A stretch of 64,000 bases of DNA from Mytilus californianus (Eukaryota): NCBI RefSeq assembly GCF_021869535.1, contig NW_026262723.1:47678001-47742000 (forward strand). The letters are read 5' to 3'. The position numbers and the translations under genes are program-made. The notes beneath the pieces are model-generated. The model had not been told where the DNA came from, did no database searches, and saw nothing but the letters and a program-made list of their open reading frames with translations. Positions 5,215 to 48,435 of this stretch are shown here, one piece after another (the stretch's first letter is position 1; the number at the start of each line of letters is the position of its first letter).

Positions 5215-5353
5215 AAATAACACATATCTGAGAGGGTGATAGAGCAGATTGTTACCCCTCGAAAAGACATCGTCAACCTTGGTTTCGCCTCAACTGATAA
5301 TGTTTCCTCGGGGTAACAATCTGCTCTATCACCCTCTCAGCTATGTGTTATTT
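5215..5353. mobile_element. Hairpin MITE
   Basis: ~44 bp near-perfect terminal inverted repeats AAATAACACATATCTGAGAGGGTGATAGAGCAGATTGTTACCCC / GGGGTAACAATCTGCTCTATCACCCTCTCAGCTATGTGTTATTT. Confidence 0.8.
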
Positions 5354-12199: not shown

Positions 12200-12665
12200 T
12201 ACATGTGCCTGTCCCAAGTCAGGAGCCTATTATTGAGTGGTTGTTGTTTATTGCTGTTTCTCATATTTGTATTAAGTTTATTGTCTTGTATAGTTTGTTC
12301 TTGTGTTGTGCTGTTGCACCATTGTCCCAGTTTAGGAGAGAGTTGGCGGCTTCAAACATGTTTAGCCTCGCCACATTCTTTATGTGCCTGTCCCAAGTTA
12401 AGAGCCTGTAGTTCAGTGGTTGTCGATGGTTCATGTCTGTCATATTAGTTTTTCGTTAATTTTTTTTTTATTATAAAATAGGCCGTTAGTTTTCTCAATT
12501 GATTATTTCACATCTTTTTTTTTATATCAGGCTGTTTTATAGCCAACTTTATGGTATTGGTTTTTCTCGTTGTTGAAGGCCGTACTGTTGTCTATTATAA
12601 TTGCTTACATCCACTTCATTTGAAATTTGGTGGATAGGTTTCTAATTGGCAATCATACATACTAC
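12200..12665 (+). mobile_element. Family B repeat: partial unit followed by a second unit, twister motif degenerate
   Basis: GTGCCTGTCCCAAGT at ~12204 and ~12384; the second motif has GAGAG, TAG and a broken P4. Confidence 0.8.
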
Positions 12666-15689: not shown

Positions 15690-16098
15690 TGATATGTCCT
15701 TTGATTGAGTTAAGTCATTTCAATTGAAATTTTATAGTGTGACTTTCTATGTTGTGATGTTACACTATTGTTTCAGAAAAAGGGTGAAGGTTTGGTACCA
15801 TTAAAACGTTTAAACCCGCTACAATTGTTTGCACCTGTCCTAAGTCAGGAATCTGATGTTCAGTAGTTGTCGTTTGTTGATGTTGTTCATAAATGTTTTT
15901 CGTTTCTCGTTTTTTATATAGATTAGACCGTTGGTTTTCCCGTTTGGATGGTTTTACACTAGTAATTTTTGGGGCCCTTTATAGCTTGGCTCCGTGTTGA
16001 AGACCGTACTTTGACCTATAATGGTTTACTTTTATAAATTTTGACTTGGACGGAGAGTTGTCTCATTGGCACTCATACCACATCTTCTTATATCTATT
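15690..16098 (+). mobile_element. Family B variant (B')
   Basis: Same architecture as family B with a diverged sequence; ends CATACCACATCTTCTTATATCTA. Confidence 0.8.
15773..15856 (+). ncRNA. Twister-like ribozyme (type P5), core apparently intact
   Basis: P5 TCAGA/TCTGA; P2 ACCC/GGGT; L1 GAAGG; TAA; T1 GC/GT; P4 CCTG/CAGG; L4 TCCTAAGT; T2 CCT/AGG; predicted cut at 15811/15812. Confidence 0.75.
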
Positions 16099-18301: not shown

Positions 18302-18600
18302 CAATAAACTCATCATAGATACCAGGATTGAAATTTTATATTTACGCCAGACGCGCGTTTCGTCTACAAAAAACTCATCAGTGACGCTCGAATCAAAAAA
18401 TATTAAAAAGGCCAAATAAAGTACGAAGTTGAAGAGCATTGAGGACCAAAAATTCCTAAAAGTTTTGCCAAATACAGCTAAGGTAATTTATTCCTGAGGT
18501 AGAAAAGCCTTAGTATTTCAAAGTTTTTTTAACAGTTAATTTATATTATGAACATATCAATGATAACTCAAGTCAACACAGAAGTGCTGACTACTGGGCT
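18302..18600 (-). mobile_element. Non-LTR retrozyme-like repeat carrying a hammerhead ribozyme
   Basis: Same family as 18875-19365, 34225-34700 and 35565-35852. Confidence 0.85.
18343..18390 (-). ncRNA. Minimal type I hammerhead ribozyme, intact core
   Basis: CGTCA-CTGATGA-GTT-TTTTGTA-GAC-GAAA-C-GCGC-GTC|TGGCG; stem I CGTCA/TGGCG; palindromic stem III; cut at 18350/18349. Confidence 0.88.
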
Positions 18601-28805: not shown

Positions 28806-29100
28806 ATAAAATTGAGAATGGAAATTGGGAATGTGTCAAAGAGACAACAACCCGACCAAAGAGCAGAAAACAGCCGAAGGCCACCAATGGGTCTTCAACA
28901 CATCGAGAAAATCCTGCACTCGGAGGTGGCCTACAGCTGGCTCCTAAATAAAAATGTGTACTAGTTCAGTAAAAATGGACGTCACACTAAACTCCAAACC
29001 TTTTAAATGAACTAAAATTAAAAAACATACAAGACAAACAAAGGCCAGTGGCTCCTGACTTTGGACAGGCGCAAAAATGCGGCGGGGTTAAACATGTTTT
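28806..29100 (-). mobile_element. Family F 3' region, truncated within the twister motif
   Basis: Minus strand begins AAAACATGTTTAACCCCGCCGCATTTTTGCGCCTGTCCAAAGTCAGGAGCC. Confidence 0.85.
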
Positions 29101-29536
29101 GTAAATGCATGAGTTACATCCAAAAATGAATAACATGTTTTCATATGCTATTAGATAAGTGATGTGAGCCCATTTCCGTACATCTCCTTACACATTGTAA
29201 ATGTTATATTTAGGTAAAAACAGTGTTAATCGCGAATCGAAAATTACTATAATTATGACTATGATTCACCAAAAGTTTGAGGTCGAACATTTATTTTTAG
29301 GATGAGATCTTTTTTAAAAACTAAGTATACGTATAACGATTATATTTAGTTCAGAAATGTACTTTGCTTTGTATATACACAACTCTATACCTGTAATCAA
29401 ATATTTATGTTTAAATGTTCATCATTTTTTTTTGTATCCCTTTACTGATTTTTTCAGTGTGAATATGATCTTTAATATTCGATGTTTCATGCAGCTTCTT
29501 TTACTTTACTCCAGATATCATCAACATAATATTATT

Positions 29537-30225: not shown

Positions 30226-31624
30226 ACAACTAGAGGCCCTTAAGAGTCTGTGTCGATCACCTGCATCTTCAACAATGGCCACGTTTTAGCAAAAATCATC
30301 ATTAAAGGGGTATAACTCTATTAACAGTTAACTGACAATTTCAGTCATGTTGACGTTTTTGTAGATCTTATCCTGCTGATAATTTTTGCTATCTTAGGTT
30401 TCTATCTGTAAAGGTAACAGTAGTATAACGCTGTTCAATAGTAAAAAATCGATGAAGCGAAAACAAATCCGGGTTACAAACTAAAACCAAGGGAAACACA
30501 TCAACTAAAAGGGGAAAATAACGGAACAACAGAAACACTGAACTGTAACAAAAACGCCAATATACAAAGAAACGGACTATTTGATACCAACTGCCATATT
30601 CCTAACTTGGTACAGGAAATTTTAAGGAAAAATGGTGGGTTGAACCTGGTTTTATGGCTAGCCAAACCTCCCGCTTATAAGGCAACGTTAAAAATACCGC
30701 TAAAATGACAACATTACGTGACAGGAATACAGTACAAATAAACGCAAGAACACTCAGGACAGAGAAATACATAAATAAATAATATAATAGTTCATTACAA
30801 CATGTAAAAAAAAGAATAACAACGGACACTTCCCATGAATTTACGACAGTTTTAGTTATAGTTTCAAGATGAAAGGCAATATTGCAAAAATTTGGAAAAA
30901 TCGTCATTAAAGGGCAATAATTTATATGAAGAGTGGAATAACGATTTCGGTCATGTTTGACTTATTTGTAGATCTTGTCTTGCTGGTCATTTTTGTTATT
31001 TAAAGTTTCTATCTATCTATAACAGTTTTCAATAGAAAAGGCCAAAATGCAAAAAAATGGCAAAATCGTCATTAAGTGGCAATAATTTCAATAAAGTGTC
31101 AACTGACGATACCATCATGTTAGCTTATTTGTAGATCTTTTCTTGCTGATCATATTTTGCTATGTAAATATTCTGTTTATCTTTTATAACTTTCGAGATA
31201 ATAAGCAAAATTTTAAAAAATGGTAAAATTCGTCGTGTAAGGGCGATTGCTCCTATACGAACTCGTCTGTCAGATTTGATGTCATTATTCATTAGGTTAT
31301 TTAGTCCATTTTGTCCATTTCTGCCTAGTCACATTTTCTCTATCTATAGCGATTTCAAGTTAAAAGACAAAAAATGCATTCTTAGCCATGTCGGCCATGT
31401 TTGTTGGCAGGCGGTGTCATCTGACATATATTTTAAACAAGATACCCTATTTGTGATGGTGGCTAAGTTTGTTTAAATTTGGCCTAGTAGTTTCAGAGCT
31501 GATAAGCTATATAAAAGTTAACGGAAAACGGACGACGACGGACAACTGACGACGACGACGCATACAATGGACGCAAAGTGATGGCAAAAGCTCACACTGG
31601 CACTTCAGGTCAGGTGAGCTAAAC
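30226..31624 (-). mobile_element. Helentron-type non-autonomous element interrupted by family G
   Basis: (GAC)n microsatellite and AGCTCAC..GTGAGCT subterminal inverted repeat at the right end; ~160 bp cores ..CGTCATTAAAGGGCAATAA. Confidence 0.65.
30411..30830 (-). mobile_element. Family G (C-related) repeat with a near-intact twister-like motif at about 30590-30687
   Basis: Minus strand GCGG-GAGGT-T-TGGCTAGCCA-TAAAACCAGGTT-CAA-CCC-AC-C..CCTG-TACCAAGT-TAGG. Confidence 0.7.
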
Positions 31625-35564: not shown

Positions 35565-35852
35565 GTAAATAAACTCATCATAGATACCAAGATTAAAATT
35601 TTGTACGCCAGACGCGCGTTTCGTCTGCAAAAGACTCATCAGCGACGCTCGAATCAATAAAGCTAAAAAGGTCAAATATAGTACGAAGTTGAAGTAAATT
35701 CCGAAAGGTTTTGTGAAATACAGCTACGGTTATCTATTCCATTGGGTAGAAAATCCTAAGAAATCGAAAAAATCTAAGTTTTATAAACACTTGATTTATA
35801 ATTATGACCATATCGTTGATAATTCATGTCAACACAGAAGTGCTGACTACTA
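35565..35852 (-). mobile_element. Retrozyme-like repeat
   Basis: Collinear with 18302-18600, with nearly the same boundaries. Confidence 0.85.
35604..35652 (-). ncRNA. Minimal type I hammerhead ribozyme, intact core
   Basis: CGTCG-CTGATGA-GTC-TTTTGCA-GAC-GAAA-C-GCGC-GTC|TGGCG; cut at 35611/35610. Confidence 0.88.
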
Positions 35853-39252: not shown

Positions 39253-39556
39253 AAGTAAAATAACAAAAATACCGAACTCAAAGGAAAACTCAAAACGGAA
39301 AGACCCTTATCGAATGGCAAAAACAAATGCTCAAACACATCAAACTAATAGAAAACAACTGTCATATTCCTGACTTGGTACAAACATTTCCTTATGTAGA
39401 AAATGGTGGATTAAACATGCTTTTATAGCTAGCTAAACCTCTCATTTGTATGACAGTTACATAGAATTCCATCATTTTGACAACAATGTGTGAGCAAAAC
39501 AAACAGACATAATAGGTAAAAATGTCAAAAATTAGGGTACAGCAGTCAACATTGTC
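39253..39556 (-). mobile_element. Family C 3' end
   Basis: Near-identical organisation to 17395-17700. Confidence 0.85.
39357..39458 (-). ncRNA. Twister-like ribozyme (type P5, family C), near intact
   Basis: P5 AACTGTCATA/TATGACAGTT (10 bp); GAGGT; TAA-TCC-AC; L4 TACCAAGT; T1 AC/GT; T2 ACC/GGT; P4 TTTG/CAGG via wobbles. Confidence 0.65.
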
Positions 39557-42500: not shown

Positions 42501-43310
42501 TTTCTAAGATTAATTTATCTAACTATTGCACAATTAATCACTTAGGGGACGACCATATGAAAATCGGTAGGAAGTTGGGGAGTATTTTATTTTGATTTCA
42601 TACCGGTATTCATTTCATCGTTTGCTATGCATGCTCATCTTTTCCACTGGTTCACGCGCGAAAACTTATTTTCACTTTCGTTCACTGTTTTTATTTCGCG
42701 GAACAAACATTTTTTTCGTCTTTATTCAAAAAGAAACTTTTTTCAATAACAAACAGGAACAATATTTTTTTTTTAAACTCAATGTCATTTTATTTTTTTT
42801 AAATTTAATTCGAAACTATTGATTTTTTCACTTCCCTTCTGAAATTTAGAATAAAACAACTTGTAAAAAAAAAACATGCCTCCAACCACACATCCAAAAC
42901 ACAGATGGTTGGTCGATGCTTGAATTTCAAGGATCTTAATGGGACATAGTCTGTTGAAATTCTACCAAAACAAAATGACTTATGAGTTCCCAAATCTGGA
43001 AAAAATAAGGAAAAATCCTGAAAGCATTCGTTATAGTAGATGCATACTGTTATTAATATACGTGTCACAGTGCAATATTTCAGTGAAGTTTCAAAGATCT
43101 GTGCTAACAATTGAGAATGGAAATGGGGAATGTGTCAAAGATCTGCGACTCATTTCACATAAAATCTTACGAGAGAAAAAAAACTCGTAAGTCATGAACA
43201 TTTCAGTATAACTTATGATCAATTTTTTTCGTAAGATTTTTTAGAAAATACCCCCTAGATGGTATCCGGTAGGTTTTGATATATATCGGAAGATAAAAAA
43301 ATATTCATTT

Positions 43311-43730
43311 AAAAATAAGGAGATGAGGTATGATTGCCAATGAGACAACTTCCCACCAAAGTTCAAATAGAGTAGATGTACATGTAAGCAATTAAAGGCA
43401 ACCGTACGGCCTTCAACAGTGAGAAAAACCCATACCGTATAGTCGGTTATAAAAAAAGGCCCCGACATGAAAAATATGAAACAATTCAATTGAGAAAACT
43501 AACGACCTAATTTATAACAAAACAATTAACGAAAAAAATATGACAGACATGAACCAACGACAACCACTGAACTACAGGATCCTGACTTGGGACGGGCACA
43601 TAAAGAATATGGCTGGGTTAAACATGTTTGTGAGCGCTCAACCCTCCCCCTTACCTTGGACAGTGGTGTAACAGCACAAAATAAGAACAAACTATGAAAA
43701 AAGGCTTAACTCATCAGATCGATACAAAGA
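43311..43730 (-). mobile_element. Family B copy
   Basis: Reverse complement of 48050-48435. Confidence 0.85.
43575..43657 (-). ncRNA. Twister-like ribozyme (family B), single mismatches in P2 and P4
   Basis: GGGG-GAGGG-T-TGAGCGCTCA-C-AAACATGTT-TAA-CCCA-GC-CATAT/ATGTG-CCCG-TCCCAAGT-CAGG. Confidence 0.6.
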
Positions 43731-44179
43731 GAAAAACATCAAACATAAACACAGACCGGACGAAGCATGGTTCATTTTCATGAATTGACGATAAAAACGA
43801 CTTATTTTGACGAATCAGGGTAACTGTTTTCAGATAACGGTAACGCTAATTTGTATGAGACCTCTAATGATTTACAATAAGGATATTTTGATGAATCACG
43901 ATTAAAATTTGACGCTAACAATACCAGAACATTACCGTTTGACGCCTGACAGTAAAAATTACTGTTTCTTCTTAAAACAAAGGAGATGGAAGACATCAAG
44001 GGCAAAACGAAAACTACAAAAAGACGAACAAGTCCTAAAACACTACACAGAAAACTATAGTTTGAGCAACACGGAGAAATGCCAAAACTGAAAAATTGTC
44101 ATATCGCTAATAAGTTAAATGAGATAAATGATTAAAAGGGTAGGGATGTAAAGGACGTAAAAACTCAGTGTATGATTAT

Positions 44180-45255
44180 AAATAACAAAAATACTGAACT
44201 ACAAGGCAAATTCAAAAAGGGGGAATCTGGGAAAACTGACAAAATCAAACGCTATCAATCAATGGAACAAGTGCAAAACAACTGCCATCTTCCTGACTTG
44301 GCACAGGCATTTTCCGAAGAAAATGGTGGGTTAAACCTGGTTTAATAGCTAGCTAAACCTTCCACTTGTATGACAATTGTCTATAGTTCCGTTATATTGA
44401 CAAAATTGGGTGAGCAACCCAAACAGACATAATAAATTAATGTGACTATAATTGGGATCCAGCAGCCTAGACTGTGTAAACATACACCACAGACATACGA
44501 CACAACGGAATAAAAAAATTCAAACAAACATACAAATAACAAAGAAGACAACAAAAAAAGGTGTTTTAGTAGATAATAAACTTGACAAAGACGCCGACAA
44601 AAATGTTTTTCACGTTTACAGTAAATTGAACAAGACGCCAATAACGTAAGTTTTTGTCGTTGATAGTACATACCGTATAATAGTATAAACTTTCTCGATA
44701 AAGTAGAAATTAGATAAAATATAAATCCAAGGGTACACAAAATAGGAAAACACACTGTAAAAAACTACTTGTGTCCGAATCGTACTTCAGGTCCCACCTG
44801 CACCAGGAACGCCCAAAGTAAAAAATCCGATGACAGGATGCATAAATACTGAGTCACGTCAAAAGTCATACGACCAAGAGAAAAAGAATAGCACGAAGAC
44901 ACATAACGGAAAAACTAAAGTAAAATAGAAAGATACACAACTTTAGCACTTAGAATTTATCACTCAAGACCATGTTGTATTATTTGTGAAGTAGACACTG
45001 AATGTTTATCTATAAGGTCTTGGTACTTTTCGATGAACTTTTTGTTTTGTTTTTTACAAGTGTCTAAAGAAACTCCGACTCATATGGAAATAAGAAAAGC
45101 TCGGCCAGGAGAGGTGCACAGTTGGTTCCCATAGGAATGCCAACAACTTCTGTAAATTACTACCTCCAAATTCAACAAATATGTTGTCAATGATAAACTC
45201 CAGCATACTGATCACTTGTTCTTCGGTGTAGCATGTTTTATTTTCGGACACACCC
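44180..45255 (-). mobile_element. PLE family C: internally deleted RT remnant plus full 3' UTR with a twister-like motif at 44280-44380
   Basis: EQVISMLEFIIDNIFVEFGG..GIPMGTNCAPLLA.LFLFPYESEFL, then KKFIEKYQDLIDKHSVSTSQII; twister P3 CATTTTC-TTCG-GAAAATG. Confidence 0.85.
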
Positions 45256-45467
45256 TAATAAAATATGTAGAATTATATCACAAAACAATACATTTGTAGC
45301 GTATGGTACCATTTTTTATTGAGGAAAATATTGTGGATTATTGTTTTAAGACGGGTTTGAATTTATCATGTGGTATGATGGTGTAAAGGGTGCGGAAATC
45401 GTTCTATTAAGATATGATATGAACCAAACGTATTAAAAGCCAGTAACATGCCAAAAAACGGTAATGG

Positions 45468-45848
45468 TTCATCGCTCGTGTATGTAACAACGTATTTGAT
45501 TTCAACGAAAGAAATCTCTGTATTACGGAAAAATTATTACACCAGGGTTTTCGATATCACAAACTAGTCAAAACATTTACTAAATTTTATCATCGGTACA
45601 AGAACATCATTCGTAAATATAAATCAACATGCAGACATCTTATACGTTCAGGTATTTCACATCCAATATTTTATGGTAATATTCTTTACAAAACACAAAA
45701 ATGTCGGCATTCACCTCAAAAGCTAACTAAACCTTTAAACAGACTTATTTGGAAAGGATATAGTTACGATACTGTTGTCAAGTCATTAAGGATTGCATAT
45801 TTTGGTATTAATATTGATTCACTCATAGGGTCTTTGCATCGGAAATAA
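45468..45848 (+). mobile_element. Uninterrupted 126-codon C-terminal frame of a PLE RT protein (family F), missed by the ORF track because it has no start codon
   Basis: FIARVCNNVFDFNERNLCITEKLLHQGFRYHKLVKTFTKFYHRYKNIIRKYKSTCRHLIRSGISHPIFYGNILYK...GSLHRK*; first half parallels RYSRAC..KLL.QG....KL..KFY.RY in families A and C. Confidence 0.8.
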
Positions 45849-46492
45849 ACACATTTATTATATAACCAGTTGTTGGCATGATACGGGTTATGTTCTTCTC
45901 ATATATTTTATGATGGTATGATACTAAACCCCTAACGGGAGGAGATGTACTTGATTTTCATATGATGAAGACATAATCTTTCAATCAGTTTAATTGAGGT
46001 CTGGAGCTGGCATGTCAGTAACTGCTAGTAGTCCTTTGTTCATTTATGTATCATTGTCATTTTGCTTAGTTTCTTTTGTTACCTATTGTGGCATCGGACT
46101 CGGACTTCTTTTAAACTGAATTTTAACTGTGCGTATTGCTATGTGTTTCTTTATTCTACATTGTCTAGAGGTATAGGTGGAGGGTTGAGATCTCACAAAA
46201 CATGTTTAACCCCGCCGCATTTTTGCGCCTGTCCCAAGTCAGGAGCCCCTGGCATTTGTTAGTCTTATATGTTTTTTAATTTTAGTTTATTTAAATGTTT
46301 TGGAGTTTAGTGTGACGTCCATTTTCACTGAACTAGTACACAATTTTATTTAGGGGCCAGCTAAGGACCACCTCCGGATGCGGGCTTTTCTCGCTGCGTT
46401 GAAGAACCATTGGTGGCCTTCGGCTGTTGTCTGCTCTTTGGTCGGGTTGTTGTCTCTTTGTCATATTCCCCATTTCCGTTCTCAATTTTATT
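45849..46492 (+). mobile_element. 3' UTR / terminal repeat region of the family F PLE
   Basis: Contiguous with the ORF; distal 300 nt match the solo copies at 14903, 28806 and 33241. Confidence 0.8.
46165..46252 (+). ncRNA. Twister-like ribozyme (type P5, family F), all core nucleotides present
   Basis: P5 CTAGAGGT/GCCCCTGG (1 mismatch); P2 CCCC/GGTG (1 mismatch); GAGGG; TAA; GC; P3 CGCA-TTTT-TGCG; P4 CCTG/CAGG; L4 TCCCAAGT; cut at 46207/46208. Confidence 0.75.
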
Positions 46493-47904
46493 AGCAATAG
46501 TGAACATGCAAAATTTATGACAGAGTTAAACATTTTACGTATACGATAAAAAATAACCTAGATACCGATGTTGATGAACCAATTCTGATGTGAAACATGT
46601 ATTTTAATTAGGTTTTAACCATAAATTACAATAATCATATATGTACCATGTAGTGATTAGGCAGAATGATGCACTAAATGACTGCTTTGTTATGAAATCT
46701 ACAAGACAGAAAACGTAGGACTAAATAAGCTCTTACGAAGCAATGTATTGTCTGATTGAATGAATGTATAACAGATTAACGAAGACTTTTTCAGGAAGTT
46801 GTACTGATGGAAGTTTCGTGTTGAACAAGAACAATACAAAATACTATCATGGATTATAATTAATAAACTCAAACGAAATAGATACACAATGTAAAATCAG
46901 GGCACTTTCACAAACACGATGACAGTATTTGTTTGATAATTCCGTACAATGTAAACCTTCAGTTGAAATTAGAAATTGAAATATTATAGACATTAAGGTA
47001 TTAGATATCTTATAGATTGTTTGATCTATGCAATTCATTTTTATAGTCTTATGGGCTTTTTTAAATTGATTTATGCTGTTTCGTTATTTCGACGTTATTT
47101 TCCTGTTCATCCTTTATTGAGACTTTTGGTTGATGTTTTTTGTTAATGGTCAATATATGTTGTCTTTTTTTTTTAAATCTAATTTTCAGCGTTTATCTTA
47201 TTTTTGAATAACAACACTGCTTACTAATGGGTATCGCATATGCCCAGAATTTTGAGTTAAATAAGAAAAGAATGTGAAAACTGAAAAGTGAACAAGGGAG
47301 CCAGCAGGACTCGTTCCGTTGACTGATTAAGGATCTTAAAAATCGTTCTTATACTAATAAGTCGATGATTTACATATGTTTTTTTTAAATCTATACCATG
47401 AAGTCAAACAGATTTAGGAAATTCGTTATTTTACTATAGAACGTGTTTTTCTGTCTATTTAATCTTTCCACCTTTCCATGGATACCTTTTGATTTTTTCT
47501 GACTATATATTTTTTCTTCAACTACTTTTGCTTCTAGGATGTCGCTCTTGTTTTGCAACATGTCGATAAGATATTTGGTATATGATATCGAACAGTAATT
47601 GCGCTTTTGAAACTCATCCTTTTTAAATCAAACTCTATTCCGTATTTGGGTAATCTGGGTTTTTTTGTTGTTATCGCTTCTCCTCAGAATGCGTAATTTT
47701 TTTTTCTCCAAAATGTTCTTTACTTCAATAGGATGATCTGATAAATTTGGACCGAATTGGTACGATCACAAGTATTTCCCTTTTTGTGTTCACATAAGTG
47801 ATATGCTGAAGTAACTCATAAATCATAAGTCATATAGACTATTAGTTATTGGCTTTGAACTAGTTGTCAGTAACTGCGAGTACTCTCAGATCTTAGTCGT
47901 ACTT

Positions 47905-48435
47905 TGACCTATAATTGTTTACTTTTTACACATTGTTACTTGGATGGAGAGCTGTCTCATTGGCACTGATACCACATCTTCTTATTTATATCTAGGGTCT
48001 TTTTGTTGTGGGAATGTATAAGTACCCTGCCACGTCCACTCTGTGTTTTTGTTAGATGTATTTCTACTTTGTATCGATCTAATGAGTTAAGCCCTTTTCA
48101 ACTGATTTTTATAGTTTGTTCTTATGTTGTACTGTTACACCATGGTCCCAGGTTAGGGAGAGGGTTGGCGCGCCTTCAAACAAGTTTAACCCGCCACATT
48201 CTGTATGTGTCTGTCCCAAGTCAGGAGCCTGTAATTCGGTAGTTGTCGTTTGTTGCGTATGAATCGTTTTACATTTGTCATTTCGGGGCCTTTTAAAGCT
48301 GACTATGCGGTATGGGTTTTACTCATTGTTGAAGGCCGTACGGTGACCTATTATAGTTGTTTATTTCTGTGCCATTTGGTCTGTTGTGGAGAGTTGTCTC
48401 ATTGGCATTCATACCACATCTTCTTATTCTTATAT
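47905..48435 (+). mobile_element. Family B: a B' 3' end followed head-to-tail by a full unit
   Basis: CCACATCTTCTTATT ends at ~47988 and ~48430. Confidence 0.85.
48149..48231 (+). ncRNA. Twister-like ribozyme (family B), near intact
   Basis: P5 CAGGT/GCCTG; GGGA-GAGGG; TAA-CCC-GC; P3 CACAT/ATGTG; P4 TCTG/CAGG; L4 TCCCAAGT; cut at 48187/48188. Confidence 0.7.

Follow-up and report, generated by a model that had tools for sequence, protein, structure and literature searches.

Type-P5 twister ribozymes were reportedly described by Roth et al. in 2014. Until now the twister has been regarded as a ribozyme that acts as a monomer and does not need its P1. In vitro it cleaves without stem P1 (PMC5408937), defects of P1 are tolerated in natural twisters (PMC11662667), and a mini-twister lacking P1 (Kosutic et al. 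2015) is cited in PMC5408937. T-variant twisters are found at the 5' end of Perere-3, an RTE retrotransposon of Schistosoma mansoni (PMC8501958). Cleavage as a dimer is known from minimal type I hammerheads, which occur in Penelope-like elements, in newt satellite and axolotl repeats and in amphibian retrozymes (PMC6765202, PMC7229834); those of Penelope elements dimerize through a palindromic, loop-less helix III (PMC6765202). Naiads are reported to be the prevailing Penelope-like elements of bivalve genomes, where their copies number in the tens of thousands and consist mostly of 3' ends, and canonical hammerheads are reported absent from them (PMC8557442). Full-text literature searches yielded dimeric hammerheads, P1-less mini-twisters and the schistosome RTE 5'-end twister variants (PMC8501958), but no account of twisters that form dimers or that reside in bivalve repeats, in Penelope elements or in Naiads. 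The suggestion made in an earlier note, that the twisters described here may be an undescribed subtype, is borne out to that extent.

The window, a 64-kb stretch of a 1.65 Gb genome of ~32% GC, carries many twisters of this kind; in its repeats and in the host element the DNA resembles that of bivalves. In the reading that we favor, with a probability of roughly 0.6, type-P5 twisters reside in the 3' UTRs of Naiad-like elements and in derivatives of these, and their P1 has been replaced by two palindromes selected for pairing between RNA copies. The sample consisted of 355 kb of this genome (the window and loci L001-L050) and 44 kb of loci from other assemblies. Units were detected with a loose core search and our own covariance model, R1, which together found 13 twister units in the window and 85 in the 399 kb. 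The core pattern has 27,290 exact matches in the genome; the reversed control pattern has 0.

One host is a 5'-truncated family A element at 45472-46492 (+), composed of the end of a reverse transcriptase (RT) ORF and a ~650-nt 3' UTR with the twister. The C-terminal remnant of the RT ORF, at 45465-45845 (+) in the ORF listing, is continuous with a 373-aa ORF of L012. Element boundaries were taken from a majority-rule profile of the non-coding 3' region only. Family A copies have a common 3' end (46492 in the window) and scattered 5' truncations, a pattern that marks target-primed reverse transcription. Homologues of the ORF 5' of the family A twister number in the thousands. The RT motifs PADKAANN, FDFSTLY, GIPMGTNCAPL and RYLDDIL are present in relatives of this ORF, P0001 and P0002, and the Pfam RVT_1 match is weak; the short ORF pieces near D, E and F copies gave one weak RVT_1 match. 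In fuller copies a GIY-YIG-like motif (R..E..WIK.LQT..PLGLN) can be read by eye upstream of the RT, as can a CxC linker between the two, SCNCS in L047 and SCEC...C.H in L052. A Pfam search of the element ORFs returned no GIY-YIG domain; the Naiad assignment thus rests on motifs read by eye and on architecture. A putative endonuclease motif, a CxC linker and a C-terminal RT point to a Naiad-like Penelope element as the host.

The twister lies in the 3' UTR (terminal repeat) of such elements at 45472-46492 of the window and at loci L001, L012, L047 and L052-L058. The elements share with the Naiad clade the putative GIY-YIG-like N-terminal motif, the CxC linker and the C-terminal RT, as well as copy numbers in the tens of thousands, mostly 5'-truncated with abundant 3' ends, and a SECIS-like element in the 3' UTR. 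They differ in carrying a twister, no ribozyme having been described for Naiads (PMC8557442). A ribozyme would thereby be assigned to a clade that prevails in bivalve genomes and from which hammerheads were reported absent. The SECIS_1-like element is found ~55-120 nt past the stop codon of the Naiad-like ORF and 5' of the twister, at 45900-45964 (+) in the window (25.3 bits); a younger copy, L012:1778-1842 (-), scores 31.7 bits (GA 35, local E 2.7e-4). Since selenoprotein-encoding Naiads are reported in clams and spiders (PMC8557442), family A elements may encode a selenoprotein too.

The complete type-P5 unit of this element spans 46163-46254 (+) with its P5 arms included, and has mismatches in P5 and P2 in this copy. 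The P5 5' arm (46163-46171) is followed by UAUA, the P2 3' strand GGTG (46176-46179), L1 GAGGG (46180-46184) and a single U. The first half of the P1 slot is palindrome 1 (pal1), TGAGATCTCA (as RNA, UGAGAUCUCA), at 46186-46195. A CA spacer leads to palindrome 2 (pal2), AAACATGTTT (as RNA, AAACAUGUUU), at 46198-46207, whose last nucleotide directly precedes the scissile bond; both palindromes are supported by the covariation counts given below. The cleavage site is T46207^A46208, or U^AA in the RNA. After the cut come AA, the P2 5' strand CCCC, T1 GCC, P3 and P4/L4 (TCCCAAGT) up to 46243, the L4 loop within P4 being UCCCAAGU, and the P5 3' arm at 46246-46254. R1 scores 75.3 bits at 46175-46245.

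These units and the described type-P5 twister (RF02684) have in common the ending in P5, the L1 and L4 nucleotides, N^AA, P2, P4, an optional P3 and the T1 and T2 interactions. The differences are that the P1 hairpin is missing, its slot of ~20 nt consisting of two zero-loop palindromes, and that the Rfam model gives 17-23 bits against a gathering score of 37.6. Rfam Twister-P5 aligns GAGGG, UAA, GC and GUCCCAAG-C-GG of the core and skips its ~20 P1 positions, with 17.3 bits at 46163-46254 and 23.1 bits in a younger copy, L015; the scores stay below the threshold because P1 does not match. At the gathering threshold Rfam had zero matches in the 64-kb window, and at E<=10 over the whole window it showed no twister, Twister-P5 being seen only in short-range scans. 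A family C copy had no Twister-P5 match, and a genome-wide RF02684 search gave none among the 79 candidates scored of ~36,000. Current Rfam models and stem-based descriptors miss such twisters, and surveys undercount them.

The identity of the core was assessed by covariation. MAFFT alignments placed the palindromes of different families out of register, and the units were therefore realigned with R1. In the 85-unit alignment, which was fitted to the structure and whose copies are mutually related, 89.7% of cells are standard pairs, against 73.9% in shuffles and 30-45% when partner columns are slid. P2 is 85.1% paired and all 4/4 of its pairs show two-sided changes, P4 is 94.6% paired and 3/4 of its pairs show them, and the two helices of the T1/T2 double pseudoknot are 85.7% and 94.1% paired; P3 is also counted among the covarying helices with P2, P4, T1 and T2. 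Across families and assemblies T1 appears as GC:GU, AC:GU and CC:GG, and T2 as GGG:CCC, AGG:CCU and AGA:UCU. Of the 14 tabulated lineages, 13 have both AAG in L4 and AA following the cut. The cores are real twister folds of type P5. In one GC-rich relative, L051, position +1 is G rather than A and the slot has only one near-palindrome, of 12 nt; this possibly decayed case was left uncertain.

The families, designated A, B1-B4, C, D, E and F, vary in the sequences of P3, P5 and the pseudoknots, and B-F are short non-coding derivatives of the Naiad-like Penelope elements. All follow one slot plan: UU(U), a palindrome of 6-10 nt, a spacer of 1-3 nt, a second palindrome (8-11 nt) and then the cut. 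The slot keeps a constant length of 21-25 nt, and in all cases pal2 reaches up to N-1, the nucleotide before the cut. In the window, family B1 is at 43579-43651 (-), with pal1 TGAGCGCTCA at 43631-43640 and pal2 AAACATGTTT. Family B2, at 48155-48227 (+), has pal1 GGCGCGCC at 48167-48174 and a pal2 whose center has decayed to AA in this copy. The family C unit, 15781-15851 (+), combines pal1 TGGTACCA at 15793-15800 with pal2 AAACGTTT and a T2 of AGG:CCU. Pal1 is TAGCTAGCTA both in family E (44290-44366, -; pal1 at 44346-44355, pal2 AAACC-A-GGTTT) and in family D (39367-39446, -; pal1 at 39426-39435, pal2 decayed in this copy). Family F, at 30599-30675 (-), has TGGCTAGCCA at 30655-30664 and AACC-A-GGTT. 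A further family A copy, at 29052-29122 (-), is 5'-truncated inside the P1 slot, and the family A copies sampled are mostly dispersed singletons, not tandem.

The seven palindromes that had been quoted from this DNA are all present where they had been placed, strand included, and the claim that every twister family has a palindromic slot extends from A-F to other assemblies. It had also been claimed that pal2 ends at the cleavage-site T. This is so at 46207; other lineages have U, C or A at N-1, and pairing of this nucleotide is not conserved, so the effective pal2 is usually the inner 8 nt. An N-1 of the unpaired type agrees with the unpaired N-1 of known twisters.

The palindromes are far more frequent than chance would give. 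Two perfect palindromes totalling at least 16 nt within the 21-25 nt slot are found in 43% of 56 copies, against 0.3% of shuffled slots and 0.45% of genomic 23-mers. When copies were clustered on flanking sequence only, the slot consensus of each clean cluster consisted of two perfect palindromes. Among the 85 units pal1 is 91.7% paired, with 5/5 pairs changed on both sides, and pal2 is 90.9% paired; slid controls reach 30-45%. The innermost pair, at the very center of the palindrome, changes freely: AU 25, UA 21, CG 11, GC 5 and UG 5 in pal1; AU 34, CG 25 and UA 7 in pal2.

The same behavior is seen genome-wide in pattern searches that fixed the flanks only, with composition read from the first 100 matches listed. 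The pal1 center within GGCNNGCC is TA in 71, AT in 26 and non-palindromic in 3 of the first 100 listed of 5,070 matches. The family B2 pal2 center is TA in 62, AT in 18, GA in 12, TT in 4, AA in 3 and AG in 1 of the first 100 listed of 1,690. The single-step intermediates between TA and AT, namely TT and AA, are thus rare, and GA is the one clear non-Watson-Crick center, at ~12% of the B2 sample. In families B1 and B3, GAGCGCUC and GGGAUCCC dominate pal1, mixed forms making up ~7% of the first 100 listed of 6,481 matches; the two differ at 4/8 positions and all differences are compensated. In this search the forms GAGCGCTC and GGGATCCC show these 4/8 compensated differences. For GGCGCGCC there are 445 matches, and in the first 100 listed its companions are mainly CpG-decay variants.

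Contigs encoding RT homologues at 49-62% identity were examined in other public assemblies; an ocean metagenome scaffold was among them. In every contig a type-P5 twister follows the stop codon at a distance of some hundreds of nt, and its P1 slot has two palindromes of new sequence. Pal1 is UGAGUACUCA, GGGCCC, GGCGCC, UGGUACCA, GGUUGACC or AGGGCUCU, and pal2 is AACCGGUU, AACUAGUU, AAAUGCAUUU, AAACCGGUUU or AAACUGGUUU. The earlier note's observation that self-complementarity is kept while the sequence changes is thereby upheld by genome-wide center counts, by other assemblies and by the 85-unit pair counts, and it includes the two central bases.

Both palindromes covary through their exact centers. 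The central bases, which would be loop positions in a hairpin, covary as pairs, which fits a duplex of two strands better than a hairpin. Predicted self-duplexes of the isolated palindromes have energies of -5 to -18 kcal/mol. In cofolding the dimer is favored over two monomers by 5-17 kcal/mol, a value that is indicative only, since the two intermolecular duplexes cross in a pseudoknot-like manner and cannot be represented together by RNAcofold. Pairing between two RNA copies is the best fit for the palindromes and is well supported. The palindromes could pair only between two RNA copies, and so the RNA probably works as a pair. The earlier proposal that two copies pair to build a strand-swapped P1 is supported as far as the pairing goes; a functional strand-swapped P1, or cleavage that needs the dimer, would go beyond this.

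In the proposed model, the P1 hairpin has been replaced by two palindromes of 6-11 nt, 1-3 nt apart, that would be under selection for pairing with a second copy, either another transcript or the second terminal repeat of one tandem transcript. Two cores would be joined by two side-by-side helices of similar length, pal1:pal1' (6-10 bp) and pal2:pal2' (8-11 bp), and the resulting strand connections are consistent with one another. At core A the strand leaving L1 would enter the pal1 helix. The strand of copy B that is paired with it would cross the 1-3 nt spacer into the pal2 helix and there pair with the strand running into the scissile N^AA of A; core B would be the mirror image. Each core would sit on a three-way junction in place of the P1 stem. 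If the minimal dimeric hammerheads of Penelope elements are a guide, the element RNA may in this way be processed or handled only where two copies are present. Arrays such as that of family F speak for the model, whereas the dispersed family A singletons and the GA centers of B2 speak against it.

The analogy with dimeric hammerheads of Penelope-like elements, already drawn in the earlier note, is apt because the host is itself Penelope-like (PMC6765202, PMC8557442). In both systems the ribozyme is in a Penelope-type terminal region, and the helix next to the core is a loop-less palindrome that needs two copies to form. The ribozyme class differs, and the hammerhead has one palindrome where the twisters here have two. 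Moreover, helix III is essential to the hammerhead whereas P1 is not essential to the twister (PMC5408937), and dimeric cleavage has been demonstrated for hammerheads while for these twisters it is conjectural. Hammerhead logic is for this reason not automatically transferable. P1-less twisters are a second point of comparison. The mini-twister, as cited in PMC5408937, and the P1-tolerant twisters of the CHiTA survey (PMC11662667) also have a core without a formed P1; they are engineered truncations or have imperfect stems, unlike the constant-length slot with conserved self-complementarity found here. The Perere-3 T-variants are likewise retrotransposon-linked with an unusual P1 (PMC8501958). 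They are open at P1, which is built in part from target-site duplications, and they begin a LINE at its 5' end, whereas the present twisters are of type P5, occupy the 3' UTR of Penelope-like elements and have palindromes.

A natural lineage of more than 27,000 copies in this genome, found in other assemblies as well, would conserve inter-copy pairing in the very slot where the twister's P1 was considered dispensable. These would be the first natural dimer-forming twisters and the second independent dimer-linked ribozyme of Penelope-type retroelements. Tentatively, the model can be carried further to an obligate dimer, in which two parallel intermolecular helices form a double-crossover-like junction in place of P1 and cleavage or re-ligation takes place only when two terminal-repeat copies meet; we regard this stricter form as possible, not as the expected outcome. 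If it were true, Penelope-type elements would have evolved dimer-gated ribozymes twice, from hammerheads and from twisters, and the absence of hammerheads from Naiads would be explained. The function of ribozymes in Penelope elements, and the reason for a design that requires two copies, would become a testable question.

The dispensability of P1 and the tolerance of P1 defects also mean that the monomer may cut alone, the palindromes dimerizing the RNA for another purpose. In that case they would be dimerization signals of the retroelement RNA, comparable to retroviral dimer-initiation sites, accommodated in a dispensable slot (PMC5408937, PMC11662667) of a twister that cleaves as a monomer. 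Such signals might have a part in co-packaging, in template switching or in producing the tandem and inverted insertions that characterize Penelope. Covariation demonstrates pairing and not catalysis, Penelope and Naiad insertions are commonly tandem or inverted (PMC8557442), and in L052 a second, inverted twister lies ~2 kb from the first. On the other hand, all lineages have the palindromes at exactly the same place, with L1 on one side and the scissile bond on the other, and neither a constant 21-25 nt slot nor a pal2 abutting N-1 is expected of a signal unrelated to the ribozyme. We give this explanation a minor though real share of the probability.

Pairing within one copy is unlikely. 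The palindromes would then be tiny hairpins, one a mini-P1 at the cut and the other an inserted hairpin. AAAC-CAG-GUUU and, in L051, GGCC-CGUG-GGCC could indeed form 4-bp hairpins, and some monomer MFE folds pair part of pal1 with its flanks. However, the folding energy predicted for the isolated palindromes is 0 kcal/mol, and those of 6-8 nt (GGCGCC, GGGCCC, UGGUACCA, AAACGUUU) leave at most 2 bp, so that a hairpin is not possible. The would-be loop positions covary as pairs, with AU, UA, CG and GC all found at the innermost pair. An intramolecular P1 stem beside the cleavage site is absent: no hairpin is predicted, Rfam skips P1, and the slot is made up of the two palindromes, in agreement with the earlier statement that no canonical P1 lies between L1 and the scissile TAA. 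Monomer MFE folds also offered an alternative helix, GGGUU/AACCC, that would mask L1 and the cleavage site; it was rejected as a selected feature, being not conserved in other lineages (AGAUU versus AAGCC in L055, for example).

Symmetry at the level of DNA, either as a site for a dimeric protein or the element endonuclease or as a mutational by-product with no role in RNA, is a very improbable account. Palindromes are identical on both DNA strands and several resemble restriction-type sites. Yet symmetry persists through free changes of sequence, which indicates base pairing rather than protein recognition, and position is fixed relative to RNA features. Some palindromes in the other assemblies keep pairing only through G.U, which would fit pairing at the RNA level; these are single copies and could be decayed.

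It is scarcely credible that the twisters are non-functional relics with palindromes kept by descent only: many copies, including the one at 46176, have core mismatches and RNA-seq gave no cleavage signal, but exact matches of the core exceed 27,000 whereas the control pattern has 0, near-identical young copies are present among the units, and compensatory changes separate sub-families and species. The RNA-seq data were four raw-read runs compared with 43300-46500 at 85% likeness, with a threshold for end pile-ups of 1/5 of local depth. Elements are transcribed on both strands, largely inside longer transcripts. The four runs showed no pile-up of molecule ends at 46207/46208, in libraries not built for 5'-OH or 2',3'-cyclic phosphate ends, and circular junctions over 43300-46500 were not convincing either. 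They give no support for abundant cleavage in vivo. This null is weak evidence either way, because the reads derive mostly from embedded copies of old age and the libraries are not directed at ribozyme ends. In one run 17 molecules, at a local depth of 60, start exactly at 45473 (+), the 5' boundary of the truncated family A copy.

Several other features were recorded in the sampled sequence. Two type I hammerheads slightly under the Rfam threshold are present in the window, at 35605-35648 (-) with 31.4 bits and at 18344-18387 (-) with 29.8 bits (GA 34). Both have the loop-less palindromic helix III ACGCGCGU, the dimer type of Penelope elements and retrozymes. A long near-perfect hairpin at 5227-5341 (+) of the window scores 47.7 bits with the plant MIR7504 model (GA 83) and is most likely an inverted-repeat element rather than a MIR7504 microRNA. 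L042:4813-7641 (-) holds a fragment of a PKD/REJ-domain gene and L037:2956-6516 (+) the polyprotein of a BEL/Pao-type LTR retrotransposon, both unrelated to the twister. At 12212-12404 (+) of the window is a partial tandem of family B, with an L4/P4 core at 12212 and a complete but decayed unit 179 nt downstream, which resembles a short retrozyme-like repeat. Six family F slots in the same orientation, 2.82-2.84 kb apart with one gap of 4.0 kb, are found at G000:C1:38905971-38921337, and their spacing suggests a tandem array of roughly 2.8-kb units.
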